Positions 1-38,737 of a stretch of DNA of 64,000 nucleotides are shown here, in pieces. Under the pieces are notes generated by a model. The model made no database searches, was not told the origin of the DNA, and saw only the letters and a program-made list of their open reading frames with translations. This DNA is from Selaginella moellendorffii (taxonomy: Eukaryota > Plantae > Lycopodiophyta). The stretch is taken from NCBI RefSeq assembly GCF_000143415.4, contig NW_003314361.1:1-64000 (forward strand). Reading direction: 5' to 3'. The position numbers and the translations under genes were made by a program. Numbering within the stretch: position 1 is the stretch's first letter; every line of letters begins with the position of its first letter.

Positions 1-90
1 CCTAAACCCTAAACCCTAAACCCTAAACCTAAAACCCTAAACCCTAAACCCTAAACCCTAAACCCTAAACCCTAAACCCTAAACCCTAAA
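1..90 (+). repeat. Terminal plant-type telomeric array (CCCTAAA)n
   Basis: About 13 tandem CCCTAAA units with minor variants at the very start of the window. The C-rich strand is on +, so the chromosome end is to the left. Confidence 0.95.
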
Positions 91-708
91 CGGTCAGAAC
101 GGAATATTCCCCAATATTCCGACTGTATCCCTGTTGACCGAGTCAAAACGGCATATACTGTTGGATTCCGCTCTTCCTTCCGATCGTGAATATGTGAGTT
201 TCAACTCTGAACTCCACACACGACTCGTGGAAAAGCGTGTATTCCGTTAAAACGGTGCCGCTCCCTCGACATCGGCGACACATGCCGACAGCTCGCGGGA
301 TGGCTCTCCCCTGCATCACCGCTGGACTCCGGGTATGTATGAGTGACCTCAGGCCCTCCACCATCCCAGTCCACACACGGTCAACGCAGGGTCAACGGTC
401 AACGACGGAATATTCCCAGAATATTCCCTGCAAAGTGAACCACGTTTTTCGTCACCGGGTACGTACGAGTGACACAAGCATTGTGGACGTAACGCATGCA
501 TCATATCATGCCGCGTTTACAAGTTATCTTGCGTCAAAGGTACGTCACCCGCCGGCTGAACGCTTACTGTCTTCGGCGATCCGCCGAAGTCATTCTCCGC
601 GACTACCACTGCTGTGGAGTAACCAACACCAGCTGTGCTACGTTCGCACCCTCGCGAGCCAACGCTGCCACGCCACTTTGCATGGCCGCCACACGGACTT
701 GCGCCACA
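91..708 (+). mobile_element. 5'-truncated 3' UTR of a Penelope-like element (related subfamily), capped by telomere
   Basis: 638-706 is near-identical to 1984-2051, the end of the PLE 3' UTR. It shares GGAATATTCC and GGTCAAC motifs with 1890-1976 and is followed by the same hammerhead module. Confidence 0.6.
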
Positions 709-1010
709 TGACAGAGCCAAAATATAAGTAGAGTCGGCACCGAGCTAGGGTTAGGGTAGACACTAGACGACTACACCCGGCTGATGAGTCCCAAAAAGGA
801 CGAAACCGGTCTCGGGTTGTCTCTTGTCCTCTCCCTCGCTCACGAATGAATGAAAATTCATTCCCTTGCCTCCTCTACTTGCTCTCGATCATGCCGTCTC
901 GACAACGGCACACGGAGAATGTGGATTGCACAAAGTGGTGCCGCAATCTCGCCGGATTGCAACACCGCGGGGTGTCTTTGACCCTAAACGCCTAAACGCG
1001 CCTAAACCCT
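709..1010 (+). mobile_element. Hammerhead-containing PLE terminal module (pLTR-like) with empty 17-bp target site and telomere-like tail
   Basis: 709-959 is repeated at 2084-2334 (offset 1375). It ends in CAACACCGCGGGGTGTCTTTGACCCTAAACGCCTAAACGCGCCTAAA, which recurs at ~1332, ~4035 and ~6707. Confidence 0.8.
765..822 (+). ncRNA. Minimal type I hammerhead ribozyme (copy 1)
   Basis: Stem I ACCCGG(775-780)/TCGGGT(812-817), extended by AGACG/TGTCT; core CTGATGA 781-787; stem II GTCC-CAAAAA-GGAC; GAAA 802-805; palindromic stem III ACCGGT; GTC cleavage triplet 809-811. Confidence 0.93.
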
Positions 1011-1195
1011 AAACGCGCCTAAACCCTAAACCCTAAACCCTAAACCCTAAACCCTAAACCCTAAACCTAAACCCTAAACCCTAAACCCTAAACCCTAAAA
1101 CCCTAAACCTAAACCCTAAACCCTAAACCCTAAACCCTAAACCGGCTAAACCCTAAACCGGCTAAACCCTAAACCCTAAACCCTAAACCCTAAAC
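982..1195 (+). repeat. Interstitial telomeric repeats with variants (CGCCTAAA, CCGGCTAAA)
   Basis: Direct reading of the sequence. Confidence 0.95.
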
Positions 1196-1314
1196 CGGAC
1201 GGCCCAAGAGCAGCGCCGGGCGTTCGCGCTCATAGTTTCACTAGTCTCTTCGAGAGTGCGCTCTCAATGTTGTTTTGATCCCTTTGGGATTGGGGTAATG
1301 TACATATATGTTTA
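1196..1314 (+). mobile_element. 5'-truncated copy (3' 119 bp) of the non-coding element at 2335-4017
   Basis: Appears identical to 3899-4017 (offset 2703). Preceded by telomere repeats and followed by the 17-bp site (1315-1331) and the module tail. Confidence 0.9.
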
Positions 1315-1399
1315 GCGATCTCGCCAGATTGCAACACCACGGGGTGTCTTTGACCCTAAACGCCTAAACGCGCCTAAACCCTAAACCCTAAACCCTAAA

Positions 1400-2053
1400 C
1401 TTTCCACGGCCCATGGATTCCATGCCATGCGCATGCGGTTCTACCACCGCCTCTGTGTCCGGGGACACCCGATCTCCTTCCTCCAACACTGCCTCTCTAG
1501 CATCTCCTCTGACCAGCAACATGAAGCTCTCCTTGCACGCTCGCACCGCTCTAGCGACGCTTGTCGACGGACCCCCCTCGCCTTTAAGCTCCCCTACACG
1601 CTTCACAGCACGCAGCTAGGCTTGGGGGACATCCTAAACCCTAAACAGGTGATGGATGAAGCTCCCGCAGACACACTCCCCTGAGTGATCACGTGCTGGA
1701 GATGCCTCCCGAATCCCGGTTCGTTCCTGGTCAGGGCTAAACTCGCTTTGCGAGCTTAGCCACATCTTTTACTACGCTTTGCAAGAGACGGAAGCATATG
1801 ATTGCATCCTTCTCTGCGTAACCGATGACCTTCAGGGTCTGGCCGATGGACTCTAGGTATGTCCCAGTCACCTCTGGTCGTCCCCCACCGGTCAACGCCC
1901 GGTCAACGCGCAGTCTACTGTCCAAACAGGAATATTCCCGAATATTCCCTGACAGTCAGATTGTTGACCGAGTCAACGAGGCCTACGTTCGCACCCTCGC
2001 GAGCCAACGCTGCCACGCCAGTTCGCATGGCCGCCACACGGACTCGCGCCAGT
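1400..2053 (+). mobile_element. 3' end of an endonuclease-deficient Penelope-like retroelement (RT thumb/C-terminus 1400-1759 plus 3' UTR)
   Basis: The frame reads LSTAHGFHAMRMRFYHRLCVRGHPISFL...PLAFKLPY...P*VITCWRCLPNPGSFLVRAKLALRA*. This matches PLE C-terminal motifs FxxRLxxRGYP, LPY and RxxNLxxxLVRAKL. It stops at 1757-1759 with no GIY-YIG domain, has an internal TGA at 1682-1684, and its 5' end is capped by CCCTAAA. Confidence 0.75.
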
Positions 2054-2139
2054 CCTAAACCCTAAACCCTAAACCCTAAACCCTGACAGAGCCAAAATAT
2101 AAGTAGAGTCGGCACCGAGCTAGGGTTAGGGTAGACACT

Positions 2140-2197
2140 AGACGACTACACCCGGCTGATGAGTCCCAAAAAGGACGAAACCGGTCTCGGGTTGTCT
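2140..2197 (+). ncRNA. Minimal type I hammerhead ribozyme (copy 2)
   Basis: Identical to copy 1: CTGATGA 2156-2162, GAAA 2177-2180, predicted cleavage after C2186. Confidence 0.93.
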
Positions 2198-2334
2198 CTT
2201 GTCCTCTCCCTCGCTCACGAATGAATGAAAATTCATTCCCTCGCCTCCTCTACTTGCTCTCGATCACGCCGTTTCGACAACGGCACACGGAGAATGTGGA
2301 TTGCACAAAGTGGTGCCGCGATCTCGCCAGATTG

Positions 2335-4017
2335 TGCAAAAGCCCTAAGTTGTTTGAGGAGAGAGCTCGAAGGCGCTAGAGAGAGAGTGTGAGAAAGAGG
2401 GAGGGAGCGAGCGTCCAGGGCGGCACAAGCATCGCAGACCGCGGCAGCTACACACGGAGCTCGTCTCCCTCCTCTTTCTCCTCTTCTCTCTCGCTCTCTG
2501 TCGTTTTTATCGATATCTCCCAAACGGCTGGGAGAAACCTCGATTCCTTCGACGGGGGGCTTCTAGGAGTGTAGATTCTCATCCTCCTAGAAGGCCGCGG
2601 CGAGATCTGCCACGGATCTGGAGATCTCGCTGGCCCTAGGTCGCTGCTGTTTTTAGGGTTTTTCGGCGGCGGCTAGGGTTTTTCGGGGCTTAGAGATTTG
2701 GAGGAGTGGAGAGGGCAGTCAGGAACACCACGGCTGCAGCAGCTGGACGCTCTCCTCTCCTCCTCTTCTTTTTTCGCTTCTCATGGTTTCAAGTTTTTTG
2801 GGAGCTCATAACTCCTGAACGGCTTGGAATTTTTCCACAAAAATTCACAGGGGGATAGCTGGGAGGGAGCCTCACACCCTCCCAGAAGCGCAGGCAAAAA
2901 TTCTTCACGGTCTCAGAGTTCTCACCTGTCCTAATTCGTGGCTAGGGTTAGGGTTCTTGGCTAACTGCGGTTAGGGCAGGACTTAGGGTGGCGGCGGGAT
3001 CTTCGATCCGGCCACTCTAAGTGTCAGGGATCTTCGTTACATGTGGTTGGCACGGCAGCAACATGGTGGAAACGCGACGGTTGCTGGTCTCGCAGCTTCG
3101 AGCGGGATTTCTCGCCTTAGGTCGGGCCATGCAAGGTGGCGACTAAGGTACGGAGAGCGTGAAGCTGCATGTGTCGGAAGTTCTTGGCGACTTGAGTCGT
3201 GGAAACACGACCAAGTCATGGGATCTTTGTTGACTGGTGGAGGACAGTTCGGGACGACATCCCGACATAGCGAAGTGTCCGTGGTGGATGGACGTGGAAG
3301 ACACTATGGGCGCATTTTTGGATCTAGTGACAGGGAAGTGCTGTCACAAAGGGGGCCAGTGGCGGATGGCTGAGTTGGTTTGCTCGCGGAGGGGATCCCA
3401 CATGGTTCTTGCTTCAGGGCTAGTCCTTTGAGGAGGTTTGCGGAGGCTTGCAAGTCTTGTGATTGTCGCGATGCCGGCAACGGGGGCTCGTATATCATTG
3501 AAGGGGGCCAGCGCACTTGTCTAGTGTGGGAGGCAAGGTAGCACGCTCTAGTCTAGAGCTGGAGGAGGCTCACACCTCGCTTGTTCTACGCCTTGGAGTT
3601 TGTTCGTAATGGGCACCGACTTAGTGCTGGAAGTACACTGGGGAGGTAGGCGCTCCAAGACACAGCATCACGTCTTGGGGCGTAACAGGTGGCTTCAGCT
3701 TGTGCAGTGGAGTCACCTTGGAGGCGAGTGACCCATGAGCAACGCCGGGTCATCGTGCTCGAGTTGGACCGCTTGGCTGCGACGACGTTGAGCTAGATCG
3801 ACATGGTGTTCGTCTGGCTTGTCATCATTGTGACCGAGTGGAGGAGTGGCAAGGCGAAGCAGGTGGCTTCAAGCTCCGCGGTGGAGTCACCTGGGAGGCG
3901 GACGGCCCAAGAGCAGCGCCGGGCGTTCGCGCTCATAGTTTCACTAGTCTCTTCGAGAGTGCGCTCTCAATGTTGTTTTGATCCCTTTGGGATTGGGGTA
4001 ATGTACATATATGTTTA
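2335..4017 (+). mobile_element. Non-autonomous (SINE-like) 1683-bp retroelement with 17-bp TSD
   Basis: Flanked by GCGATCTCGCCAGATTG at 2318-2334 and 4018-4034, with an empty site at 943-959. No recognisable ORF. The 3' ~40 nt resembles the LINE 3' end (6653-6689). Confidence 0.85.
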
Positions 4018-4056
4018 GCGATCTCGCCAGATTGCAGCACCGCGGGGTGTCTTTGA

Positions 4057-4229
4057 CCCTAAACGCCTAAACGCGCCTAAATCCTAAAACCCTAAACCTT
4101 AACCCTAAACCCTAAACCCTAAAACCCTAAACCCTAAACCCTATAAACCCTAAACCCTAAACCCTAAACCCTAAAAACCCAAAACCCTAAACCCTAAACC
4201 CTAAAAACCCTAAACCCTAAACCCTAAAC
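4057..4229 (+). repeat. Interstitial telomeric repeats
   Basis: CCCTAAA and variant units. Confidence 0.95.
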
Positions 4230-6689
4230 TGGTGCTTTTGCGGACGACACTGCCTTGTTCCTACTTGCGACTAAGGAGAACATGGATGCAGCTAAGAAGG
4301 CGTTGGTGCAGCAATTAACTGGAACAAATTAGTGGGCATAAATTGGGGGCGACCAGGCATCGAATCTTGGGGGCAGGACATCGGCTTCCAGTGGCTCAAA
4401 CCAGGAGAAGACGCTAGGTACCTGGGGATCCAGGTTGGTACTCGGTTCAGTGCAGCACTTCAGGATGACACCTTGCTTCGACGGGTACGAACGTCAATCC
4501 AGAAGTGGGCTCCCCGGAAACTCGGCTTGCCAGCGAGAGTGGTAGTCGCTAGGAGCATCATTCTGCCCAGCATCTGGTACCACCTCTCCATCTGGCTTGT
4601 TCCAGAACGCACTCTTAGAAAGGTACGCACGATGGTCCGTCAGTATTTGTGGTGGGGCGCTCTGGTCACAGGGAGGAGCATGGCCAAGGTCGCGTGGCAA
4701 TCTATAGCACGTCCGTGAGTCTTGGGAGGACTTGGAGTAATCGATCCAAGTGACATGGCGAAGGCGCTACGGTACAAAATCCTCCTCATGGGCCTTCAAC
4801 CAGGTAATCAACCTTGGAGACTCATGTTTAGGCAGAACTTGTTGGCAATCCGGCCCAAGCACAACACTGCAAGACCGTGGGAAGAAGATCCACGTTGGCT
4901 CTTTGCCGAGGGGCCGAAGCAAGTAGTCAAGGGCAGCACTCTAGTCCAGGGGTTTCTCCGGTTATGGAGCGCGTTTCCAGTCAACAGGGAATTGCCAGGG
5001 CGAGCGGAGGACTGGCTGAACCAGCCCCTGTTCTTAAACGACCTCTTCAAACTGGATGATAGGACGCTGGGCAGGGAGGACCACTACACAATCTGGAGAA
5101 AGCTACATAGCACAGGCTTCCGAACTCTCAAGCAGCTGGTGCGGGTTCTGGACAAGGACAGGAGGAAGACTACGAGGCATATGCAGGTCTTTAACCCGGG
5201 ACGGTGGAGGAAAGTCCACCTTGATCTTCTTCGCATTATCAGAGCAGTGAGTGCGGCGAAGCAGGGGCAACTCTGGCCTAGGCGTTGTCTCAAATCTGGA
5301 GACTTTGTGGCTCTGCAACGGGACGTGGAGCCAGACAGGGAACGAGTTAGCTTGGGGGCCTGGACACGGGCATTTACGGCCCCAACACCAGCTTGGGAGG
5401 ACAGGGATGTGGAGGTATGGTTCGTTGTGTCTCCAGACCAAAATGTTGGGCGTCCTTTTCGAGTCTTGAGAGGTGACATGCTGTTGCCAGCAGGAGACGA
5501 ACAAGTCATGCCGATGGTGACGGATGACGAGGTCAAGGGTAGGATTCGAGTAATACGACAGGCTCCGAAACAATCGGTGGTGGTTCAATCGTTGGCTGCA
5601 CTAGAGGGGGAAGGCATTCTTAGATGGTGGCGACAGCAGCTCATCGAGGATCTGGATTGGGACCCCGCAGCATGGAAACGAGGAGCGAGGAGCTTCTTCT
5701 CCTTCGGCGTCAAGGAAGCAAGGGATGGTCTCTTGACCAGCAGGGAGGAGGCCCGAGGGGAGATCCCCAAGCTCTGGAAGAAATGGATCGAGCAAGGAGT
5801 TGAAACAAATCAGGTGGTGGGCAACACGCTTGCGTTCTGGAAACTACCGGTACAGGAGAAAGTCAAGGCCACCTCTTGGTTGGTGGCAAATAACGGGCTG
5901 CCGGTAGGACAGCGGTTCCAGGAAGAAGCATGCCGACGGTGCAAGGAGTGTGGCGAGCTGGAGACAGCGCGACATGTCCTATGGGAATGCGACGTGGCGA
6001 GAGAAGTTTGGCGACAGATCTTCAAGGCGACGCAGGAACTCGGAGACATTCCAGAGTTTGAGGCTCGGAGTGGGGATATCCTCCACTGGTTTGAGGGAGC
6101 TAGAGGCCCAGCCATTGGTCCAGCTTGGAGGCGTATTCGCTGCTACGGACGGCACCGATGGAACATGCGAGTCCGGTGGGACATGACAGGGGCTGAAGTT
6201 GGGATGTCCATCTGGGAGGCGTTGGGCCAAGAGCGCTGGTCCATTTGGAGGGCAACAGGACTGCAGGCACTTTGGGAGGCGCGGAACCACTGTCGCTTTG
6301 ATGGGCAACAAGCGAGAATATCGGCAGTGGTGGTATCATGGTGGAGACTCACTCTTGCAGCGGTGCGTCTTCACTACACCATCCTGAAAGAGCGGGCAAA
6401 ACCGAGGCAGCTCGAGGAGTGGAGATCTAGGTGGCTCCCATGCTTTGGCAAATTGGGAGGTGGCGAGATTCGTTGGCAATGGCGCCCCCTAGACTCTGTT
6501 CTAAGGTCAGCTCGTGGGGGAGACTTGGACATCGACATGATTCGCTCGAGACGACTACGTCCACTTCTACTCCAGGACTAGGTCTAGCTACGGCATATGA
6601 GGATCACGTAGAGTAGCTCATTGAGAGGGCGGCACGCCCATTTTTTGTATTAGTCCCATTGGGACATGGGGAATGTACATACACGTTCA
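4230..6689 (+). mobile_element. 5'-truncated, inactivated L1/Tx1-type LINE (ORF2: RT C-terminal half plus zf-RVT CCHC)
   Basis: Begins GAFADDTALF (FADD at 4237-4248), then a frameshifting deletion before GAAINWNK. Continues with RYLGI, KVAWQSIARP*VLGGLG (stop 4716-4718) and CKECGELETARHVLWEC, ending at stop 6581. The 108-nt 3' UTR has no poly(A) and abuts GCGATCTCGCCGGATTG at 6690. Confidence 0.92.
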
Positions 6690-6728
6690 GCGATCTCGCC
6701 GGATTGCAACACCGCAGGGTGTCTTTGA

Positions 6729-6770
6729 CCCTAAACGCCTAAACGCGCCTAAACCCTAAACCCTAAACCC
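6729..6770 (+). repeat. Innermost telomeric repeats; boundary of the terminal retroelement array
   Basis: CCCTAAACGCCTAAACGCGCCTAAACCCTAAACCCTAAACCC, followed by an abrupt switch to AT-rich DNA. Confidence 0.9.
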
Positions 6771-8278: not shown

Positions 8279-8652
8279 NNNNNNNNNNNNNNNNNNNNNN
8301 NNNNNNNNNNNNNNNNNNNNNNNNNNNNNNNNNNNNNNNNNNNNNNNNNNNNNNNNNNNNNNNNNNNNNNNNNNNNNNNNNNNNNNNNNNNNNNNNNNNN
8401 NNNNNNNNNNNNNNNNNNNNNNNNNNNNNNNNNNNNNNNNNNNNNNNNNNNNNNNNNNNNNNNNNNNNNNNNNNNNNNNNNNNNNNNNNNNNNNNNNNNN
8501 NNNNNNNNNNNNNNNNNNNNNNNNNNNNNNNNNNNNNNNNNNNNNNNNNNNNNNNNNNNNNNNNNNNNNNNNNNNNNNNNNNNNNNNNNNNNNNNNNNNN
8601 NNNNNNNNNNNNNNNNNNNNNNNNNNNNNNNNNNNNNNNNNNNNNNNNNNNN
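8279..8652. other. Assembly gap (N)
   Basis: Run of N. Confidence 1.
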
Positions 8653-13795: not shown

Positions 13796-16158
13796 CTACT
13801 CTACCTCTTCGTCACTACTTACCTTCTTCCACTTCTGCTTCTGTTCATCGCTACTTGAAGAGGTTTTCCGCATCAGCTTCTTCCTCTTCAGGTTCTCTTT
13901 GCTATCACATTTTGGTCTTGGCCTGCGCCGTGAGCGTAGCTGTGAGAAGGGCCCCTCAAGTATGGCACATGCAGCACACTGCCTCCCAGGACCGCCACAG
14001 TCCTTCATAACCCCTGCGTCCAATATTGACTTCACGATTCTCTCTTTAGTTCCAGTTACCCATATCCGATGCTTCCGCGCCTTCGCCTGCAGGAATGCCT
14101 TCTTGCATTTATCGACCCAGTTCAGCACCGCAGGGTCCATTTTAGACCGCCTCTCCTTCTTGGACTGCTTGCTCTTCTCCATGGCCTCTTTTCTCTTCTC
14201 TTCCAGCTCCTCTAGCAACTTGCAATCTTCTTCCGTGATACCATCGGCGAAGGACTCCAAGAAAGTCGAAGCATGCAGCTGATACTCCATAGCATCCGCC
14301 TCTTTGTCCACGGGGTTCAAATCAACCTTCGTCGGGCTGAAGAAGGCATAATGCACCCGAAGTTCGTCCTCGCTCACGTCCGGTACCCACATTTGAACGT
14401 ATGACTTCTTCACAAACTTCTGTTCTGACTTTCGATGGTTCTTGGGGTTCATGGTTATCTGCCCAGCGATTATATGGACGACGCCTTCAGACTTGAACAC
14501 CACCACGAAATCTGTGTACTTGAAGAAATAACTATCCGGAAGTAGTACAACTCCCTGACCGTCCCGAAAGCCCTTAGCCTGCACCTGCTTCGGCTCTGCT
14601 CCCTCAAAAGGGAGTTTGGTGAATTCTCTCGGAACCTTGAAGTCCCCTAGCTTCATGCCTTTCTTACAAATCACTTCACCGATAAAAGTTTCAATCAGCC
14701 AGCCGAGCTCAGCCCAGTTCATACCCCTCACATCTGCCAGCCTTTGACGTGCGTAAGCCATCAAGACTTTGTTCCGATAGGCTGTAGACGCCAAGCGCCT
14801 GTTAACCTCCTCCATATGGATTCTTGCGATAAAAGGGGTGCAGAACTCCGTCACCGCCGTAAACGCCGGGAAAAGAACAGGCAGTTCCGTATATGGTAAC
14901 TCCGGGTCCAAATTCGCCATGTTCCTGCGTATCGCTTTCTTTAAATCTTGAAATTCCGGATCCTGTTTGTAGCGCCTCACAAGCATCTTCCACTCCAACC
15001 TCTGCAGGACAGAACGTTAAGGCCCTAGTTACAATAATTCACACGGTGCACTTACATGGCAGTACTCCTCAATTAGCTGGTTGGAATCAGTAGCAGAAGG
15101 GCCAGTGGCAGGAGCAGCAGCAGCAGAAGAATCAGCGGCAGAAGGATCAGTGGTGGCAGAAGGATTGCGCCAGATATCGTATAGCTCGTCAAGTTCAATG
15201 TACTTTTTTCGAGCACCTGAGACGCAACCTGTCAGGCTGTTGCAGTGGTTAACAAGAATGGAAAGTGACAACGGGTGGCATGCACCAAGGTCCTCGACAT
15301 CACCCCAGTGCTCAGGATAGTTCTCAAGAAACTTGCCAAGAACAGTTCCCGACAGGTACGCATCACGCTCTGCCTGTTTGACGAAGATAGTTAGCAAACT
15401 CCAATCTGAAGGCATCACATTACCTTCGTGAACATCTTGCTGATATTATATACTGTGGGACTACCTTGAAACCGAGATTCTTTCAATGCTTCACTGTTGG
15501 GTGAAAGGGCCTTCACCACGACATGTGCTTGCCCCCAAAGTTCGTCTGTCCATTTCCTGGCTGCCTTGCGCTTCTCTGCATCACTTCCGGTCCTCAGATC
15601 ATGACGCTCTTCCCCATCATCAGTCAACAGGACGATCCTTTCGCCTAGCCGCCTCCGACTTTCCAGAAATGCCTTAGCATCTTCCGGTGTTTCCATGTAG
15701 GCTATGGCCTCCTCCGCGCCTTTCTCGTTGCAGAACGTGAACAGTAGCACGTCACGGACCTGTTCAGCAACGGGATGATCCACATCCAAGTACCAAATAC
15801 ACACTACTCTGGTGATAGGATATCCGGGTTGTGGCCGCTTGTTGAACTCATCGAAAACTTTTATAAGCTCCCAGGCGAAGGCTCTCAACATGCTGCTTTT
15901 CCCCCCTCCCTTGGTACCTGTCAATATGAAAACGCCCCCCATGCTATCGCTGAGTAAAGGTTTCACAGCAATCCTAAAACCGATGTACTCCTCCGTGCTG
16001 CAAAATGCGAACTCGCGAGGAGGCCTCTTGATCTTGCACGAATCCTCCAAGCCCGGGAACGGAAGAGAAACCTTGGAGCCTTGATTGCGCAACTCTGCAA
16101 CATCTACTTCACGGGCCCTCGCCACTCGCGCCTTCTTCACCTTGCTCTCAAGCTCCAT
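13796..16158 (-). CDS. Crinkler/RHS-like P-loop NTPase plus REase-fold protein, 3 exons (16158-15424, 15373-15056, 15001-13796), about 752 aa
   Basis: Walker A GTKGGGKS and Walker B IVLLTDD; C-terminal PDSYFFKYTDFVV...IAGQITMNPKNH fits the CR-REase pattern (P..F...D...QIT...H). GT-AG introns 15374-15423 and 15002-15055 join the three ORFs in frame. Confidence 0.7.
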
Positions 16159-16188: not shown

Positions 16189-18459
16189 ATATTTAAATTT
16201 AACCTAATAATAATCTTAAGTATGACTAACCAGACCGTTTTGGACGCCTATGCATGTGGCAAGCGATCAAAGACAAAGATGAAAGCAGAGCTCTTCTGTT
16301 TTCGCGGGTTTACCTCAGATTAATATAACCATAAGCCCTAGGAGACATTTTCCCGAAGGAGAGCCCACTTAAAGCACATGGGGGTCCGAAGCGGATTTTG
16401 GGCAGCTTGTTGTCAAGTTGTGTTAGACAAACTCACAGTCTCTTTCTAAAACCTCAATGGTAGAAACTTATAAAAGGTGGATAGCAACATGCAGAAGCTG
16501 CTGCAAAACATCTTGCTCATCATGACAACAGACCTCGTATAGGTCACAAGCAACTTAGAGACGAGGTCTGTTGTCATGATGAGCAGCCTCTTCACAATGT
16601 TGTAGAAACACTGCTGTATAATATTTCAGCTTTGATTATGCTTGGTAAAGCAAAAGAGTCCTATTTAGATATCTTTGAAACCAATGAGACATACTATTCA
16701 TTCTAAAAAGGTGCCAACTTCTTATAAAGCTTGCATTTTCTGCGACAATATGCAAATCCCAAGGACAAACACTCCTAAGGATAAACACTGCAAAAACATT
16801 CCTTCTAAGATTAATTGTCAGCCATAGTCCAGCTTTATGTTACGTTCTTGAAGGGAACATCAAAGAAATGAATTTTGATCTTTATAGAAGATGCAAAACA
16901 GAATCATTAACACAAAAAATATTGGCTACAAATAGAACTATATCACCAAACAACAGTTTTCCTATCTATTCCAGCAGAGCTAGATTCCTTGCTAGTTCTG
17001 TATTTATTCTACTCTGCCAGTTTCAATACTATTTTTGATCTACTTGCTGAACTACAGACGAGACCAAGGCTTAAACTGCATCCATGTTCATCCCTACTCT
17101 ACCTCTTCGTCACTACTTACCTTCTTCCACTTCTGCTTCTGTTCATCGCTACTTGAAGAGGTTTTCCGCATCAGCTTCTTCCTCTTCAGGTTCTCTTTGC
17201 TATCACATTTTGGTCTTGGCCTGCGCCGTGAGCGTAGCTGTGAGAAGGGCCCCTCAAGTATGGCACATGCAGCACACTGCCTCCCAGGACCGCCACAGTC
17301 CTCCATAACCCCTGCGTCCAATATTGACTTCACGATTCTCTCTTTAGTTCCAGTTATCCATATCTGATGCTTCCGCGCCTTCGCCTGCAGGAATGCCTTC
17401 TTGCATTTATCGACCCAGTTCAGCACCGCAGGGTCCATTTTAGACCGCCTCTCCTTCTTGGACTGCTTGCTCTTCTCCATGGCCTCTTTTCTCTTCTCTT
17501 CCAGCTCCTCTAGCAACTTGCAATCTTCTTCCGTGATACCATCGGCGAAGGACTCCAAGAAAGTCGAAGCATGCAGCTGATACTCCATAGCATCCGCCTC
17601 TTTGTCCACGTCCAGGTTCAAATCAACCTTCGTCGGGCTGAAGAAGGCATAATGCACCCGAAGTTCGTCCTCGCTCACGTCCGGTACCCACATTTGAACG
17701 TATGACTTCTTCACAAACTTCTGTTCTGACTTTCGATGGTTCTTGGGGTTCATGGTTATCTGCCCAGCGATTATATGGACGACGCCTTCAGACTTGAACA
17801 CCACCACGAAATCTGTGTACTTGAAGAAATAACTATCCGGAAGTAGTACAACTCCCTGACCGTCCCGAAAGCCCTTAGCCTGCACCTGCTTTGGCTCTGC
17901 TCCCTCAAAAGGGAGTTTGGTGAATTCTCTCAGAACCTTGAAGTCCCCTAGCTTCATGCCTTTCTTACAAATCACTTCACCGATAAAAGTTTCAATCAGC
18001 CAGCCGAGCTCAGCCCAGTTCATACCCCTCACATCTGCCAGCCTTTGACGTGCGTAAGCCGTCAAGACTTTGTTCCGATAGGCTGTAGATGCCAAGCGCC
18101 TGTTAACCTCCTCCATATGGATCCTTGCGATAAAAGGGGTGCAGAACTCCGTCACTGCCGTAAACGCTGGGAAAAGAACAGGCAGTTCCGTATATGGTAA
18201 CTCCGGGTCCAAATTCGCCATGTTCCTGCATATCGCTTTCTTTAAATCTTGAAATTCCGGATCCTGTTTGTAGTGCCTCACAAGCATCTTCCACTCCAAC
18301 TTCTGCAGGACAGAACGTTAAGACCCTAGTTACAATAATTCACACGGTGCACTTACATGGCAGTACTCCTCAATTAGCTGGTTGGAATCAGTAGCAGAAG
18401 GGCCAGTGGCAGGAGGAGCGGCAGCAGAAGAATCAGCAGCAGAAGGATCTGTGGTGGCA
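16189..18459 (-). pseudogene. Tandem duplicate of 12871-15157 (exon 3 and part of exon 2 of the CR-like gene), 5'-truncated
   Basis: Near-identical sequence; ORF 17094-18299 differs from 13796-14998 at about 10 residues. Homology stops at 18459, where a GC-rich unrelated sequence begins. Confidence 0.9.
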
Positions 18460-21700: not shown

Positions 21701-22391
21701 ACTTGAAGAATGCATTCCTTTTGGTAGCAATTCTCCTTCACACAACCGGTCAAGTTGCCTTCATTCTCCCAAATGACCCCCATTGGATGTCCTGCCTTAT
21801 GAGGTATGCAAGTCAAGTCAACTTCAAGAGGTTCTCTTCCGGGTGCATCATGGATAAAGGCGTTCGGGTTAAGACCNNNNNNNNNNNNNNNNNNNNNNNN
21901 NNNNNNNNNNNNNNNNNNNNNNNNNNNNNNNNNNNNNNNNNNNNNNNNNNNNNNNNNNNNNNNNNNNNNNNNNNNNGTAAGAAATCATCTTCTGTTTTGG
22001 TTGTCTCTAAATGTTTATTATTCAGGTTATGATGTGGACTTACCATGTGTTCTGCAGAAGAGAAAATGATAGTTTTCGTGATAGTGAGCGTGCTGCAAGG
22101 GTTTTGCCAGGGTATGATAGCTTTATTGACATCATACCAAATCTCGTAGATGACAACATCCGCAACACATTGTCTGGGTATCAGTTCTAATCTCCATTAG
22201 TGATGCATGTCCTACTTGAGCTTTATTGCCCAACTAGGGGTGTTATCATCGATTGCACAGTAGGTAGCGGTTCGATGGTCGAAGCAGCACGTGACTCTGG
22301 TAGATCGGTGTTTGCGATTGAAGAATATGAATTCTTCAAACGCCGTCTTAGAGGTTTTTGTCCTTCTCTATCAGTTGCTTCTAGAAGGTAA
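18781..22391 (+). pseudogene. Multi-exon gene: Pro-rich N-terminus, ParB-like domain, beta-class N4/N6 DNA methyltransferase-like C-terminus (decayed)
   Basis: FYIIDENHRWCAW (ParB DGxHR-like); FMLFDMPDG (motif IV-like) upstream of LLELYCPTRGVIIDCTVGSGSMVEAARDSGRSVFAIE (motif X-I of N6_N4_Mtase). Premature stops and an N gap at 21877-21976. Confidence 0.65.
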
Positions 22392-30100: not shown

Positions 30101-33032
30101 TCCACTGTGCCGCCACTCCACTGTGAGCCCTAGAGTAGGTTAAATCCCTTACCCTAACATGCCTTAATATACCTTTGAGCCTCCCTTTGACCGACGTTGA
30201 CCATGTAGTCAAAGCTGGTGCCTAACAATTCTTCCCCCCCAACAAAGTCCTTGTCCCAATGACAAGTTGTACCGGTGATCACCTTTTTTAGGGAATCCTG
30301 CTCAAGCTCCTGGTCCATCTTCCACAGCCGTATACATCAAAGAGGGGCCCGTCACTCCAAGATAGTACACCTTTCAACTGGCTGACATAAAATACCGGAT
30401 GAATTTTCACCCCAGCTGGCAGTCGCCATACCACAAGCCGCTTTACCAATGTGCTCCAGCACTTCATATGGACCAGCATATTGATAGGAGAGTTTATCAC
30501 TCTTCCCTATCCGTAAAGGCACTCTTCCACCGCTCACTTGACGGAAAGATCACTCACACAAAGACAAGATCACCCACCTTATATTCCCGGAATTGGCGAT
30601 GCTCATTGGCAAATTTCTCCGCTCTATCCTGAGCTACTTGCAAATTCCGTTTGCACACCACCAGAATCTCATCAAGTTCTGTGGCCAGATCAGTTGCCTC
30701 GGAATCAAGCTTATCTTGAACATCCTTACTCAAATGCAATCTCAACTCCACTGCTGTTCGAGGATGCCTTCCAACCATGGCAAAGTAAGGACTTAGCTTG
30801 GTTCCACTGTGTTGGCTATTGTTATAAGCAAATTGCACAAATGGAAGATATAGATCCCACTGTCTTTGCCTTTGACCAATGTTACAACGTAGCATATCCT
30901 CCACCACCTGATTCATATGCTCGGTTTGCCCATCCATCTGAGGATGATCTCCACTCGAGAGTTTCAAAGTCACTTGCATAGCCTTTGCAAAGCTTTTCTA
31001 AAATCCACTAGTAAACTTTGAATCTCGATCACTAATGATGTCCTTTGGCAAACCAAAATCAAGAAAAACCTTCTCCAAGTAAACCGTAGCCAAGTATGAG
31101 GCAGTGACAGTCTTCCGAAGAGCCAACAACTGCACATACTTCGTCAACCGATCCACTATTACCCATACTTGCTCCTTTTGCCTCTGTGTTCGTGGCAAAC
31201 AAGTGATGAAGTCCATAGAGATACTACACCAACGGCTCTGAGGAATAGGTAAAGGTTGCAAAAGTCCCCCCGGCTTCTCCCGTGGCACCTTAACCCGCTG
31301 ACAAAGCTCTCATGATTTACAATATTTGAGGATATCAGCCTTCATATTCCTCCAATAAAAGTTGCGCTTAATCAACTCATACGTCTTCTTCCCCCCAAAA
31401 TGACCGGCCTCTGGACGATCATGATAGTGGAATAAAACTTGAGTAATTAACACATCCACCCGTGGCAAATACACACGGCCATTGTAATAGAGAATCCCAT
31501 CCACCAATGAGAAAGGGGCTTCCATCTAGTCTCGCAAAGAGGCCACCTCAGCATCCTGAGCCTGAGCATGCTCAACCAACTGCCCAAACTCGCTGACCAC
31601 TTTACTCAAATGATGACAAAATTGTTGTCGTAACATCGTCACATGACGAACACGAGATAAAGCATCTGCCACCACATTTGATTTTCCCGGACAATGCTCA
31701 ATAGGAAACTCCCCAAACTCCATGAGTTTGACCATCCAACGAGCTTGCCTAGTGTTCAACTCCTTCTGTGTGAAAAGATACACAAGTGGTTTGTGATCTG
31801 TTAACACCACGAACACTGCACCATAAAGATAGTGCCGCCACGTTTGCAAAGCATGAACAATAGAGAGTAACTCTTGCTCATATGTGGAATAGCGTTGCTC
31901 TGCGGAATTCAAAGTTCGACTCTCATATGCAATAGGCTGTCCCTCTTGCATGAGAACTCCTCCCAGTGCATAACCACTCGCATCGCATGTCACCTCGTAA
32001 GGTTTCGATGGATCAGCAATGCGAAGCACTGGAGTCTCGCTCAACAATCGTTTCAGTGCCACAAAATTCTCCTCTTGTGGCTTCTTCCACTCAAATGGCA
32101 CATTCTTGCATAACAACTGCGTCAAAGGAATAGCCACCTCTACAAACTTATACTAGAAACATCGGTAGTAACTAGCCATACCAAGAAACCTGCGCAACTC
32201 AGCCACTATAGTCGGTGTAGGCCAGTTTTCCACCATAGCCACTTTCCTTAGATCCGTCTTGACCCCCTTAGATGTCACAATATGGCTTAGATATTCCACC
32301 TCTGACTTTGCAAATTCACATTTGCTCTTCTTCGCATAAAGTTTGCTGTCGCAAAGTAACAAAAGAGCCTTGATGCTCTATTTCGTTAAAGTGGGATTTA
32401 TTCAGTAAAATGGGACTAGGTACAAATTTTCAAGTATTTGAAAATGACGTGAAATTATATGTTTTTTGTCCAAGGGCTAGACATATCTGGGGCATGGTGA
32501 CTAGCGCGGTGACTTTGTGTCCAGACTGAGTCCATCTGATTGTATAATAAATCTCATTGTCAAGGTGAACAAGCCGAATCTGAAGCTAAAGAAGAGCGAT
32601 GGCATGCGCGCACACACTATTTGTTTGTTCATTGAGTGTGTGGTGAGCTTTCCAAGATGAACGTCATTCCTATTAGCCAGACATATAACTTAATAGTGAG
32701 AACATTTAGATATTATTCAATGTTATTTTTTTCTAACGAATCTAATTGTGAAGGTGTAGCAAGAGGCATTGCTAGTCTGGAGAAGTCATTTAACTCATTT
32801 GACCCTTAGTGTATTTTCATGAAACTAAATAACATTCATATTATTAAGGAATTTCTCTAGTACCTTTTTTTTACGACATAGAGGCTTGCATTTCTTTCAA
32901 AGGTGATTTAGTAAAAGGCCTGAGGGCACATGCCATTCTATTTCTCAAACCGGTATTAAGATATACTAGTGCAAAGGGAAAAAAGTATTTGGTGATCAAG
33001 TAAATGGCATGAGGGCACACGCCATTATAAGC

Positions 33033-33290
33033 CTAAGCGCTAGTGGACACCTCCTTTTTGGTACTCTCAGCAGTACTATCATCCTTCTCCGGGTCAGTTG
33101 TTTTGCTTTGGATTGTTGTCTCTGACGTTACTGAGGCGTTCTCGATAGTTGTTAATGTTGCCGTTTGTTCAGAAAAATGATCATCTGGAGTATAGTACGG
33201 GGAGTTTGGAAGACTTATATATTCTACATCTTCACCTATCTCCTTCTCCATCTCCTTTTCTGCCTCACTTACAGATTTTGTGCTTGCCAT
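33033..33290 (-). CDS. Small acidic Ser/Thr-rich cargo ORF of unknown function
   Basis: MASTKSVSE...YISLPNSPYYTP...IENASVTSETTIQSK has a diverged homolog at ~24640-24872, which supports coding status. Confidence 0.45.
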   Translation of the reverse strand: MASTKSVSEAEKEMEKEIGEDVEYISLPNSPYYTPDDHFSEQTATLTTIENASVTSETTIQSKTTDPEKDDSTAESTKKEVSTSA

Positions 33291-34003
33291 GAGAACGCTC
33301 TTCACCCTAAAATATGGAGTTCGTTGTGTTATAAAAGGAAACCAACACACACGCTGCAAGGGAATGATGGTACATAAAGCATGTAATCCCACAATATGGG
33401 TTTATGTGCCATTAATATGGGCCACACGCCATATTATTAGATTTATGCACGTGTGATTGGTAAATGCATATGTCACATCATCTTTGTTTTACCTCACACA
33501 CTATATTAGGCCTAATGAACCATATCACATGTGCGCACATGCTATATATATGGAGAAGTATTATGCAAGGATAGAAAAATTCAATACATGATTGTGGAGA
33601 GCAATGGCATGAAGCCACATGCTAAATAACATTTTAGAGAAAGAATTAAAATAAAAACATGCAAACAGTACTGAGTGGACCAAGACTTAGAAGTGCACAA
33701 TTGAATGAGGTATTTCTAATAAATATTTCACTCACCTCATATAGGAATGGCTACCACTCTCAAATGGCATATCGCCTCATGCCATCACCTCGCAATTTGT
33801 TATAACAATCCGATGAATTCATATTCGGTTTGTTCACCTTGAACTTTAAGTAAGATTTGCTAGAACAACTAAGAATTTATACTTGTTATTTGTATCATCT
33901 CACCTAGGAATGGCGTAAGGCCACATGCCATCACGCCTCCTCTGATTCAGATTCAGATTGTTCACCTTGAAATAAAATACATTAGAAACTTAGTAAAGGA
34001 ATA

Positions 34004-36823
34004 TTAATGAATCTCACCTTGAACCCGGGTTATGAATGCTCTTGCTGCATCTTTTGCATGGTCTAGCAAGGTGATGGTGGCACTCTGCTTCCGCATCCAA
34101 CCATGCACAACATTATCCACCGATATGCTCATGTTGGGATCCCTTGGATTTAGCACCCATCTCTTTTCTAGGCAATCCTTCGTATATCCGGAACTTGGCT
34201 TGAACCACTCCACAGTTACATTGAAGGAGTTAGTTTCCGCGTCCTCCTCTGCATCAGTGATGCAGCGCCCCACCCATATCATTTGTTTTTTATTACTGGG
34301 TCTGACAAGCACGACCATTCCTTTGCAGACCTGTATTGGATTGAATGCTGAATCCGGCTTCTTGTTCCTCGGCCCACAATAGTGATCCTCAACATCGTTA
34401 TCTGTCACTGCATTTCCAAAGGACATTGTTCCGCTACTATCTGGTGCTCTGGGTTTTGGCCAAAAGGACTCTTCCAATTCTTCATATACAACCGGCCCAT
34501 TTTGGATAGCAGATATAATCTTCTCCCAGTATTCGAGCAAAGGCTTGCACCTCTGAAAATAGGATTCTCCACCAAACACCAACCCCCTCTTCTAGAAGGC
34601 AATATGCTGTCTAATCCCGGCCACTATACTTTTCTGGTCTTTGAGTCCATCCGGGTGCATCGGCCGTGGGGAACCCTGAGGAATCATAGGTTCCCCAGTT
34701 ATGGGATCTCTCTTGAAGAGTTCAATGCCGTCCACTGGCAGCCACACTGTGTCCCATTCTCTCATCTTGTACCTAATCACTGGAGCACCGTCACGTATGC
34801 TGAAATGAAACTGAAGAGGCTTGGAGTGGCCAATCAGCGTTTCGGATTCGTCCCTGATGTAGCCTCTTACAAACCCCTTAAAGTCTGGAACCTCTGTCAC
34901 AAGTGCAGCTTCAACAATGCCTTTGATGCAATTTTGGAATTCATCGTAGAGTTGTGGGAGGGTGAGGACATTCGATCGCCGGAGGGACTCTGCCAGGTGA
35001 CTGAACATGGCATCGACGTCTTCATAAGTGTGCCCAACCATGAGAAAGCCAAGTGTAACCGTTTCAAATATGCCTTTGGCAACAAGCATCGCCAAGTACG
35101 CGAAGACATACATGTTTTTGTTCTCACTGCCAGCATTGTCTGTTTGGAGCAGAAGATGGGGTGGAAGGCCACATCAGCCGCAAGAACTTCCTTGAGATTC
35201 TGCTTCGTTTGGATGAGGCTGTGCATTCACTGGGCGACCAGCCTCATCGGAATGGCATGAGGCCTCATGTGATAACCCTACAATCTGACGGCCAACATAT
35301 TCACTGGGATGGCATGGGGCCCCACGCGATACTGCAAGCCTTTGCTCCTCCTCCAGCTGAACCCTGTATGGGGTTCGATCGACAAGGGCCTTATGCAAGG
35401 GTTGGCCGTTCAGCTCAGTCTACGCACTTTGCAGAGACCTTAAGTGTTTTGCTAGGGACGCAATCATCATGTTTGCACCCCCGCCACCCCATAGAGGTAC
35501 AAAGAAGTTCCCATAGTTCTGGGCACCATGCCCATGAGCGATTATGCCAAACAGAGACACAGGCAGCTGCATGGATGAAGAGATTGCCTTGGGGGCAGGA
35601 TTGAGTCGAGGTAAGCACGTCTTTTTTTGGTCCATTTTGTCGTGGATGATGCAGAGGTAAGAGTCAGGTCTCTCCATGGAGAGAATCCTGTTATGATAAT
35701 ATGCAGTCCTATAGCTTCTCTGCTCGATGTTGTGGTCGAGCTGCCTTCTAACCAACGTCTCTCGCTCTTGAGCGATGCAAGAATTCTTCGACAAAGCCAT
35801 TTTGATAGCAGTGCACTCGTCACACTTTGAAAAGCTGGAGTACTTTCCTATACGCACATCCCTGAACCTGTTGCTCCACAATCTACTAAATCTAGATTGG
35901 CTCAGCTTCCTGTAGCCATTACTCTGGAGTTCCCGATTCACATCTTCCAATATGGCCCCCTTGGTATACATGGAAGGGAGAATTCGTTGGGTGTCTCGAG
36001 TTCCATCTTCCAAGAGGCGGGTTTTATGTGGTTGCTGCTCGCTACATGTCTCGACAAACCTCTTGAAGATTGCCTCTCCATATACAACGATGGTTTTGTG
36101 AGTACCGTCGTTCCCATGGACTACCTGTTGAACCCTTTGTTCCTCGAACTCAGTTTTGATTCTGTAGAATATGGTTCGAGGGACTCCATAAATGATTCTT
36201 CATGCCTTCATGCAGACCAAACCCCTTTGGAAGACCATGCCCCCCACCTAATGTTCTGAAGCATCAATAGATGACCGTAATGCCTCATACACAAAATTGC
36301 GAGCTGCCTTCCAGGACAATGTCTTGTATCTTGCTCTCTCCTCTTCAATAGCATCCCAATCAGCATGTTGACAGCACCTCCTCTTGCCACAAGCAACTGT
36401 CGAGACCATTCGAACCTCCATCGCCATTTTCTGCCTTTTCGGTTCGTTGCTCAGATCCCTTTGGCTGCGCTTTAGGAAGGTGTACTTTCTTTTCCCATGA
36501 AGAGATGTTCTGTCATCAGTTGTAGTGGTGTTTGATTGTGAATCCTTCACATTCTCAAACACTAAGTGCCTCAATTTCCACCGCACAATGCTTCCAATAG
36601 TCAGACTGTTTTCTTCTGTGTCAACAACCTCTAAAATCACAACTCCAATATCATCCCAGCCCAATTCTTGATTAGCAACCGCATCTCTTGGATCGACAAC
36701 TGTGGCTAAGCCCTCAGCTACCACCTCCCCCTCGGGGTTGTTTAGAAACACCTTTGCCTGAATCCATGTAGCACGGTTTTTAAGATCCACGGAGGGAACA
36801 TGCGTCGCACTTGCGGAGGCCAT
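34004..36823 (-). pseudogene. DDD transposase, Sola1/DUF7869-like, about 940 codons in one frame with five premature stops
   Basis: The five listed ORFs share one frame. Motifs: FSKCDEC, IIHDKMDQ, LPPHLLLQTDNAGSENKN, FLMVGHTYEDVDAMF. Stops at 36248, 36200, 35420, 35174 and 34592. Confidence 0.8.
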
Positions 36824-38737
36824 TCTGAAAGTGTAGAAAAGAAGTTAAGACCATACAAAAAATGATTGGAGAATGGCCTAAATCATAACATACCAAACAA
36901 CCTCAATAGCATGAGGCCACATGCCATTATTCAAACATGCTATTGACACCCACGTGAAATTTCGCATTCACAAAATTGGCATGAGGCCTCATGCCATCTT
37001 GATATACACATAGTTGCAGGCAAGTAAAAACATACATGACAATACTCTAGCTATGAAATTGCAAGGGCCCAAGATGGCATGTGGCCTCATGCCATTTCTA
37101 AATGTGGTCCTAAGCCATTCCATGGTGAATATACCAGGAAGCACAAGTGCCGAATATCAAGAGGAAGCGGTAGCCACACCAAAGACAATGCCGCTCGCAA
37201 CACCGCAACTACTCGTAGCGCCGCTCGCAACACCGCAACTGCTCGTAGCGCCGCTCGCACAAACTGCCACTCGCATAAACTGCCGCTCGCAATGGCGCTC
37301 GCAATGCTGCAACCGCTCGTAGACGCATAAACCACAGCTCACAACGCCGCTTACACAAGCAGCGCTCACTGCGCTCAGCGGAACCAAGAACACGGCGTAC
37401 AAAAATGATAGACCTAGGAATGAGTTCGAGAATTCAAAAATAACACACGCTTGAACGTCACATCAAATCCTCTGACAAACCAGATCTTATGACTCCTCTG
37501 ACAAATTTCAAACTGAGTAGCTTCTAGACTTTGTTGTCGGAAGTTGAACTTTGTCACATCATGTCCTTGCCTCGATCCAGCTGTGCCATGTCAGTGATTC
37601 AAACTTTGCCATGCCATGTCAGCGATCCGCGCCAAGATTATTCGCCGTGTAAAGGAATAATTATGTTGTGTGTGTACGTCCATTTATGGCAATATAAGGC
37701 CACACGCTATTCAAAGAATAATGCTAGTCGAACATTTTTTGGTGCATTTTTGGGTTCAAAATTGCATGAGCCCACACGCTATAAAGTTTACCTGTACCAA
37801 AAATAGAAACAGTTTTATTTACTTGAAAATTTAAGTGGTTGAGGCATTTTTAAACTTACAAACACATGCCCTACTTACATTCCTTTGGTTGCTTAAAATT
37901 CAAAAATATTATAAACCTTTCTTTTTGCATTTTCAATGTTTTCAATTATGGTTTTTGATTTTCGCAGGACCAGCCTAGTAATCTATTTGCATCCCGTCAT
38001 GTTTATAGCTAGCTTTCGTTTGTCCCCTTCGCTAGCCTGAGATACATCTGCTCGGCATCTGCCTCTTACAGCATTTGCCCAGAAAGGGCATCTTTCTTCA
38101 CGCAGCATTTGCCACATGTTTAGGGTTTAGGGTTTAGCAATTCAGTAGCTTGATAAACATGCAAATACAGAACTTGATGCAAAATCCTTTGATATGTCAG
38201 GACCATAAACATATTTCAATAGAGAGGGTCCTTTCATTTCATAACTCCTTACGTAGATCTTGGTGAAACCAAAGTTAGTGAAGTTGGTTTCTTGTGATCC
38301 CGCATCTGATTGTGATGTCCCTTTGCAGTGTCGATGGAAAAGTCAATGCACACTAAACTGTAGAATCTTGGAGCAAAATAACGGTCGGATCTATGGCAAA
38401 TGCCCCTGAAACATTGTAAGGCTCGTGTGGTCTCATGTGGTGTTCGATCGAGATGCTTCTTTGCAGGGTCATCAAGAAGGACATTGTATACCATTCTTTA
38501 TTTAGCTGAACATTTGGCATTTTTTGAAATACAAGATGCTTTGGAATATCCAATCATGCATGGTATAAATATAGTGAGGGTATTAAATGATATCCCAATC
38601 ATGATCTTTCTTTTGGATTTCGCGTGCATGCAGTCCGAGGAATGATGATGTTGCGGATTTCTTTTGGATTTCACGTGCATGCATGCGCGTGGCAATCCAG
38701 AAATTAATGGTGGCGCCTAAGTCCGAAGAATGATGAC

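Follow-up and report, generated by a model that had tools for sequence, protein, structure and literature searches.

The first 6,770 nt of a 64,000-nt stretch of the Selaginella moellendorffii genome (hereafter the window; RefSeq contig NW_003314361.1, positions 1 to 64,000, forward strand) form a telomeric array, in which a long interspersed nuclear element (LINE) of L1 type and a non-coding partner element, nc, are joined at their 3' ends to the same short cassette that terminates two hammerhead ribozyme modules. One of these modules is interrupted by nc, which lies between two perfect 17-nt copies of the first cassette hairpin (HP1), an arrangement best read as one target-site duplication. 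We consider insertion at HP1, followed by hitch-hiking on the cassette as a docking tail for chromosome ends, to be the best model of the array, with a probability of approximately 0.5. An earlier annotation of these letters (the original prediction) had proposed a site-specific LINE and a non-coding partner that target a 17-bp site inside a telomeric hammerhead/Penelope module. Coordinates of all features are given in Table 1.

The 17-mer was found on the + strand at 943, 1315, 2318, 4018 and 6690 with 0-2 mismatches, compared with approximately 0.07 occurrences expected by chance. Its location and copies are as predicted, but it is not a free-standing site: it constitutes 17 of the 18 nt of HP1, a 7-bp hairpin, and lacks only the last base, C. 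HP1 opens a cassette of approximately 60-80 nt, in which HP1 is followed by HP2, CTTTGA and degenerate C-strand telomere units, and this cassette ends four units of the array. Downstream of the site, the sequence as far as the first degenerate telomere units, with HP2 included, is present four times with 0-1 mismatch, and the 25 nt after HP2 are invariant in the four cassettes. All base-pair cells (48/48) are kept across the four full cassettes, and the five variable columns comprise three one-sided A-U/G-U changes and two loop changes. Such tolerance of G-U pairs, in a set of only four sequences, is suggestive of constraint on the + strand RNA of the cassette. An origin of the 17-mer in ribosomal DNA was ruled out, as the tail has no rRNA or other Rfam match. 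A scan of metagenomes with the HP1-HP2 pattern returned 0 matches.

The module exists in an empty form (943-959) and in a filled form, and the two modules are 98% identical up to the 17-mer (the empty-form module compared with 2084-2334). In the filled copy, termed copy E, module 2 (2085-2317) is followed by the 17-mer, nc (2335-4017), a second 17-mer and the rest of the cassette. Positions 2318-2334 are identical to 4018-4034 and bound exactly 1683 bp; a mismatch at the adjoining base on either side limits the repeat to exactly 17 nt. The empty and filled forms and the single insertion with a perfect duplication inside the module thus stand as originally predicted, in coordinates and in letters. 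A perfect 17-nt duplication that interrupts a 98%-identical module is a signature of target-primed reverse transcription and supports insertion at HP1. Entry with such a duplication is seen once, for nc.

The relationship between nc and the LINE is evident from their last approximately 55 nt, a terminal 3' untranslated region (UTR) held in common, with 30 of 40 positions identical just upstream of HP1. This region includes a stem-loop (LINE 6653-6665, nc 3981-3993) of the form (G/A)TCCC...GGGA(C/T), whose outer pair is G-C in one element and A-U in the other. The shared stem with its compensatory change supports nc as the non-autonomous partner of the LINE, and the predicted partnership was therefore borne out. 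As in a LINE-dependent non-autonomous element, nc has no recognisable coding capacity (no Pfam match) and a 3' end homologous to the LINE. Identity between the LINE and nc is 62-75% upstream of HP1 and 94-96% downstream. Furthermore, copy E and a second, 5'-truncated copy of nc (copy B) are identical over 116/116 nt of the nc body and have two differences in the cassette. The step in identity at HP1 and the restriction of the B/E differences to the cassette suggest that the cassette has a history of its own, as a target would.

Three 3' junctions (1314/5, 4017/8 and 6689/90) fall at the same nucleotide, as the original prediction stated. However, they are not independent, because 1314/5 and 4017/8 both belong to the nc family and because nc and the LINE can be aligned across the junction. 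The claim of at least two independent insertion types is consequently not supported, as a shared junction can be inherited homology and only one 5' junction is present. What the window offers on a site-specific LINE is one 5' junction with a 17-nt duplication and three non-independent 3' junctions, and recurrent targeting of HP1 by the LINE goes beyond what it can establish alone.

The LINE copy is 5'-truncated and begins at the FADD motif of the reverse transcriptase (RT). It has a C-terminal zinc-binding region (zf-RVT, PF13966, approximately 5811-6011, E = 5e-9), and is dead, being disrupted by a frameshift (near 4300-4330) and by an in-frame stop codon (4716-4718). Its 3' UTR ends in ...ACGTTCA and is joined directly to HP1, with no poly(A) or A-rich terminus. 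When the C-terminus was searched against two protein libraries, the closest relative was S. moellendorffii LOC112341605 (69% identity), the only close one in 15 billion proteins. This relative carries RVT_1 and zf-RVT domains, and its best solved-structure match is human L1 ORF2p (E = 5e-24, versus 1e-7 for R2). The description as an L1/Tx1-type protein-coding LINE accordingly holds for the L1 type, on the basis of FADD, zf-RVT and the ORF2p match of the relative; this fragment does not separate the L1 clade from the Tx1 clade. The RT fragment gave no match in the protein search, and exact look-ups of twelve open reading frames (ORFs) gave none. The LOC112341605 locus (locus L001, scaffold GL377652.1) contains no 17-mer, and its LINE is also 5'-truncated. 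That LINE is uninformative on the tail, since it is truncated on the 3' side by a DNA transposon, of which another copy is present at 32.4-45.2 kb of the window. The endonuclease proposed to do the targeting finds no support in the window, where the LINE starts only at the RT FADD motif and neither an endonuclease domain nor ORF1 is visible.

Two modules of approximately 290 nt were found in the array, each with a predicted type-I hammerhead. Both hammerheads (775-817 and 2150-2192) scored 40.5 bits, above the Rfam RF00163 gathering score of 34, and possess the conserved CUGAUGA...GAAA core, helices I-III and a GUC cleavage triplet, as would be expected of this type. Helix III consists only of AC/GU around a 2-nt loop inside the palindrome ACCGGU. 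The ribozyme thus appears in a minimal form, and the predicted cleavage, after C811 and C2186 (131 nt upstream of the 17-mer), may require action as a dimer. Two further elements, A and D, adjoin the same module 5' end, once via 3 nt and once via approximately 4.5 telomere units, which marks this end as a defined terminus of the module. Like the ends of endonuclease-deficient Penelope-like elements (PLEs), the modules combine reverse-complement telomere repeats with a hammerhead, at a telomere and in an orientation allowing priming by the G-overhang. No Penelope RT ORF is present in 1-6770, and the module is at most a terminal fragment or non-autonomous derivative of a PLE. Of the predicted hammerhead/Penelope module, the hammerhead is therefore real and the telomeric, PLE-type end is confirmed, but membership in Penelope is not. 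The upstream half of the module also contains a telobox-like CTAGGGTTAGGGTAG (within 744-757) between a TATA-like AATATAAG (726-733) and the hammerhead. The G-strand telomere or telobox-like motifs of the module and nc have a polarity opposite to that of the cassette tail.

As the window is the first 64 kb of S. moellendorffii v1 scaffold GL377665.1, its + strand, which begins with 13 C-strand plant telomere units (1-90), represents a chromosome end. Telomerase repeats are interspersed with retroelement pieces of the same orientation throughout 1-6770: all seven element pieces are on the + strand with their 3' ends centromere-ward, and C-strand telomere repeats follow each 3' end. The G+C content is 53-56% through 6770 and falls to 29% in the AT-rich unique DNA beyond. 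This alternation of telomere tracts with uniformly oriented pieces confirms the telomeric array of the original prediction, and the 5'-truncated pieces at 1199 and 4230 are capped by telomere repeats, as in arrays that grow by addition to telomeres. Both truncated copies adjoin these repeats without the upstream half of the module, which indicates that element and cassette were added to the end, or were eroded and healed there, as a unit. Only 2-4 telomere units separate the pieces at several junctions (C-to-D, D-to-E, B-to-C and LINE-to-unique DNA), pointing to additions onto very short or uncapped ends. Besides the cassette, the array has another type of 3' end that adds to telomeres, namely that of elements A and D, which terminate in ...GCGCCA and lack HP1/HP2. 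No Pfam match was obtained for ORFs of segments A, C, D and nc, and no further copies of the families were found elsewhere in the window by blastn or tblastn.

Under the favoured model, HP1, HP2 and the degenerate telomere complement would form a structured RNA cassette at the 3' end of the hammerhead modules, of the type by which endonuclease-less PLEs have been proposed to anneal to the G-overhang and self-prime reverse transcription. The LINE and nc would insert into it at the first HP1 base through target-primed reverse transcription, presumably with the help of an endonuclease, leaving the 17-nt duplication. An inserted element would retain an intact cassette downstream, such that read-through RNA would end in the docking tail. 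We infer that this RNA is copied by an RT onto chromosome ends as a unit, which would produce the 5'-truncated, telomerase-capped copies of the LINE and nc; co-transcripts may in addition be processed by the hammerhead. Besides the duplication, we counted in favour of this model the 3' UTR common to the LINE and nc with its compensatory pair, the full conservation of cassette pairing, the step in identity between the LINE and nc, the telomere repeats adjoining the truncated copies, and the uniform orientation. The published docking model for PLEs and the above-threshold hammerhead score were also counted for it (PMC8557442, PMC4209133, PMC12477314).

Several observations weigh against insertion at HP1. 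The window holds only one 5' junction and no full-length LINE, and its 3' junctions are not independent. The module resembles the LINE over the 30 nt upstream of HP1, with 17 of 30 positions identical (nominal p approximately 0.001), as would be expected more of homologous 3' ends than of a target unrelated to the LINE. In addition, nc contains a single C-strand telomere hexamer, a CCCTAA located 9 nt from the nc 5' end, and the upstream 17-mer might therefore be part of a module whose tail has been shortened. The jump in identity would also be explained by strong selection on a functional tail. Two further findings speak against a pure target-site reading, namely the telomere flanks of the truncated copies at 1199 and 4230 and the variable hairpin positions, all of which keep RNA pairing or fall in loops.

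It is possible, though we would not expect it, that the cassette is instead the LINE family's own functional 3' end, and that the LINE, nc and the module all dock on the G-overhang without an endonuclease. The cassette would then perhaps have been captured once from a PLE or be shared by descent, with no recurrent targeting of HP1, and the duplication in copy E would be a one-off (the capture itself, a shortened-tail module added onto nc, or template switching). The 'empty' modules may in that case be products of HP1-to-HP1 deletion. This alternative is in line with the telomere capping of both truncated copies (2/2) and the absence of the upstream module half from them, with hairpin pairing kept at the RNA level, with the lack of poly(A) on the LINE and with the innermost LINE cassette meeting unique DNA after only approximately 2.6 repeats; the module-LINE likeness and the CCCTAA at the nc 5' edge also favour it. 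Yet the exact 17-nt duplication breaks a 98%-identical module, as a target-site duplication would, and a step in identity at the junction is unexpected under common descent without unequal selection. Priming of the module by microhomology on the nc 5' end, at TGCAA, was considered as a source of the duplicated arrangement, but it predicts a junction two bases off the observed one, which counts against a one-off origin, and it was not adopted as the main model.

More tentatively still, and in our judgement doubtful, the LINE may parasitise every part of a Penelope-derived module, through co-transcription, hammerhead trimming, a dual guide cassette and co-maintenance with the telomere. The LINE would be co-transcribed from the upstream half of the module, with its TATA-like AATATAAG and telobox-like motif, and the module hammerhead would trim the RNA 131 nt upstream of the insertion site, leaving target homology on both sides. 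The HP1 arm of the cassette would pair with nicked HP1 and guide homing into other modules, while the telomere complement would pair with the G-overhang and permit endonuclease-free end addition. If so, a land-plant telomere would be co-maintained by telomerase and a three-layer retroelement consortium.

An unlikely alternative is that the LINE is telomere-repeat-specific and endonuclease-dependent in the manner of SART1/TRAS1 or Tx1-1_ACar, cutting (TTTAGGG)n, with the cassette and its telomere-like end being part of the element and helping to prime at the cut. Telomere-targeting LINEs are known, one of them of the Tx1 clade (PMC10088271, PMC7265360), telomere repeats flank copy B at either end, and the LINE follows a long tract and has approximately 2.6 units after its cassette. 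This would leave unexplained the presence of nc in a module with a 17-nt duplication of non-telomeric sequence, no endonuclease is visible in the 5'-truncated LINE, and the 2-4 repeats at several junctions are more readily explained by end addition than by insertion into a long tract. Less likely again is an artefact or rearrangement: the end of this Sanger-era scaffold could have been misassembled, or cassettes could have undergone unequal recombination or gene conversion without retrotransposition into the site. The window does come from the start (first 64 kb) of a scaffold of the 2011 era that includes N runs, and an array of short repeats invites recombination. On the other side, unique element sequence is found within a few hundred bases of every junction, overlaps of 17-80 nt are too short for an assembler to join reads, 48-63% of the sampled words of 2085-6770 are present in other public runs labelled with the same organism, and cassette recombination would not yield a 17-nt duplication around foreign DNA. 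In runs guessed to be RNA, 20-26% of the sampled words were present, which suggests that part of 2085-6770 is transcribed, word sampling not resolving which part.

The telomeric hammerhead/Penelope background has already been published, and it is the LINE layer that appears new. Docking through reverse-complement telomere repeats next to hammerheads has been proposed for endonuclease-less PLEs (PMC8557442, PMC12477314, PMC13159263), and hammerhead-bearing elements of this kind at S. moellendorffii telomeres are described in PMC4209133 and PMC8557442, the latter citing Gladyshev & Arkhipova 2007. Telomere-associated transposons are described as rare in plants, with the Selaginella PLEs as the standard example (PMC12477314). 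The array resembles endonuclease-deficient PLEs (Coprina/Athena and Terminons, including Coprina Sm1/Sm2 of S. moellendorffii) in its telomeric location, centromere-ward 3' ends, reverse-complement telomere 3' end, hammerhead and alternation with telomerase repeats (PMC8557442, PMC4209133, PMC12477314, PMC13159263). It differs in that the window has no Penelope RT, in that the hammerhead lies approximately 190 nt upstream of the telomere units rather than immediately adjacent, and in that the tail is also carried by a LINE and its partner. Canonical hammerheads have been reported for Selaginella PLEs, whereas helix III here is a minimal palindrome.

The site-specific elements R1/R2 (in ribosomal DNA) and Tx1L (in Tx1D) join one nucleotide of a repeated host sequence without poly(A) and with a fixed-length duplication. 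The target of Tx1L, Tx1D, is itself a mobile element, and R2 co-transcripts are processed by a ribozyme resembling that of hepatitis delta virus. The array shares with them the one-nucleotide junction and the lack of poly(A), and with Tx1L a putative mobile-element target; the upstream hammerhead could, by analogy with the R2 ribozyme, process co-transcripts. In contrast to these systems, a single duplication event is seen here and the 5'-truncated LINE shows no endonuclease; the putative target, moreover, is a hairpin in a telomere-docking RNA cassette, so insertions would gain a second way of spreading.

The telomere-associated LINEs HeT-A/TART, SART1/TRAS1 and Zepp1 end in poly(A). For SART1 this is documented in PMC7265360. 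Like HeT-A/TART/TAHRE, SART1/TRAS1, Zepp1 of Chlorella, GilM/GilT and Tx1-1_ACar, which mix with or replace telomerase repeats, the array consists of head-to-tail 5'-truncated copies at a chromosome end (PMC10088271, PMC7265360). By contrast, HeT-A/TART, SART1/TRAS1 and Zepp1 have the repeat itself as their target or are independent in their addition to ends. A Penelope-type hairpin and telomere-complement tail has been reported for none of these telomere-associated LINEs, which include the algal Zepp but no listed case from a land plant. As in LINE/SINE (short interspersed nuclear element) pairs with a common 3' tail ('stringent' recognition), nc is non-coding and shares the approximately 55 nt and the compensated stem-loop of the LINE; unlike the SINEs, it is 1.7 kb long with no visible tRNA, 5S or 7SL head and no Rfam match to one, and has an approximately 45-bp hairpin near its 5' end and sense TTAGGG motifs (four, all within 2653-2990).

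In the literature searched, no description was found of a LINE or LINE partner joined to a Penelope-type tail in any plant. If the LINE and its partner do target or borrow the Penelope docking tail, they would represent the first case in land plants of LINEs incorporated into chromosome ends and a rare one of two unrelated retroelement classes with one common 3' recognition and docking module. They would also offer a tractable system for studying the role of 3' RNA structure in guiding reverse transcriptases to DNA ends and the relation between telomerase-like and LINE-like priming.

Table 1 Features of the chromosome-end array (window positions 1-6770).
Feature	Position	Strand	Remarks
Terminal telomere tract	1..90	+	C-strand (CCCTAAA)n reading inward
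Element A, non-coding fragment, family A/D	91..706	+	3' end 638-706 96% identical to 1983-2051
Module 1, upstream half	709..942	+	Type-I hammerhead 775-817, predicted cleavage after C811
Module 1 cassette, 'empty' form	943..1016	+	HP1 943-960, HP2 962-975, CTTTGA, degenerate C-strand units
Telomere-repeat tract between additions	1017..1198	+	CCGGCTAAA variants near proximal end
Copy B, last 116 nt of nc	1199..1314	+	Identical to 3902-4017; broken 5' end joined to telomere repeats
Copy B cassette	1315..1400	+	HP1, HP2, degenerate and approximately 3 canonical telomere units; element C directly after
Element C, non-coding fragment	1401..1646	+	Ends in two telomere units without HP1/HP2
Element D, family A/D	1647..2084	+	Ends ...GCGCCA, then approximately 4.5 telomere units (2052-2084)
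Module 2, upstream half	2085..2317	+	Hammerhead 2150-2192; 5' end same as module 1
Upstream 17-mer (HP1 without last C)	2318..2334	+	Putative 5' target-site duplication
nc, 1683-bp non-coding partner	2335..4017	+	No Pfam match; hairpin 2378-2495; 3' stem-loop 3981-3993
Downstream 17-mer (4018-4034) and remaining cassette	4018..4080	+	
Telomere-repeat tract capping truncated LINE	4081..4229	+	
5'-truncated dead L1-type LINE	4230..6689	+	RT FADD 4237-4248 to ORF stop 6579-6581
LINE 3' UTR	6582..6689	+	Stem-loop 6653-6665, no poly(A)
LINE cassette	6690..6770	+	HP1, HP2, degenerate and approximately 2.6 canonical units; AT-rich unique DNA from 6771

Further observations were made on individual elements of the array. 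The imperfect hairpin near the nc 5' end (2378-2495) has a minimum free energy of -63.8 kcal/mol (z = -3.4) and a weak, sub-threshold likeness to plant microRNA precursors (MIR156, 29.5 bits versus a gathering score of 62); small RNAs directed against the element could originate from it. Variant telomere units CCGGCTAAA (1141-1198) lie just distal to copy B, and the junction shares CGG with nc; both may reflect the healing of the broken end of copy B. Elements of the A/D family carry a near-palindromic GGAATATTCC-NN-AATATTCC beside repeated GGTCAACG units (101-146, 395-430 and 1890-1976).

Beyond the array, the window contains two approximately 97.5%-identical 400-aa ORFs without a Pfam domain (13796-14998 and 17094-18299; SELMODRAFT_428230/428231), which lie inside an approximately 2.3-kb tandem duplication. 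SELMODRAFT_428231 and the ORF at 13.8 kb share 98% identity, and GL377665.1:7094-28747 is 100% identical to window 7094-28747. A 76%-identical paralogue occurs on another scaffold. The paralogues of this ORF pointed to an internal locus, and no allelic scaffold was found. Assembly gaps (N runs) are present at approximately 8300-8650 and 21880-21975. The DNA transposon mentioned above, approximately 12.8 kb in length, lies at 32375-44635, and its copy at L001 12777-22658 (GL377652.1), which interrupts the related LINE, is 95-98% identical, indicating that the transposon moved fairly recently. Finally, an intact 1295-aa ORF on the - strand (59501-63388) encodes a Ty3/Gypsy polyprotein with gag, protease, RT, RNase H and integrase.

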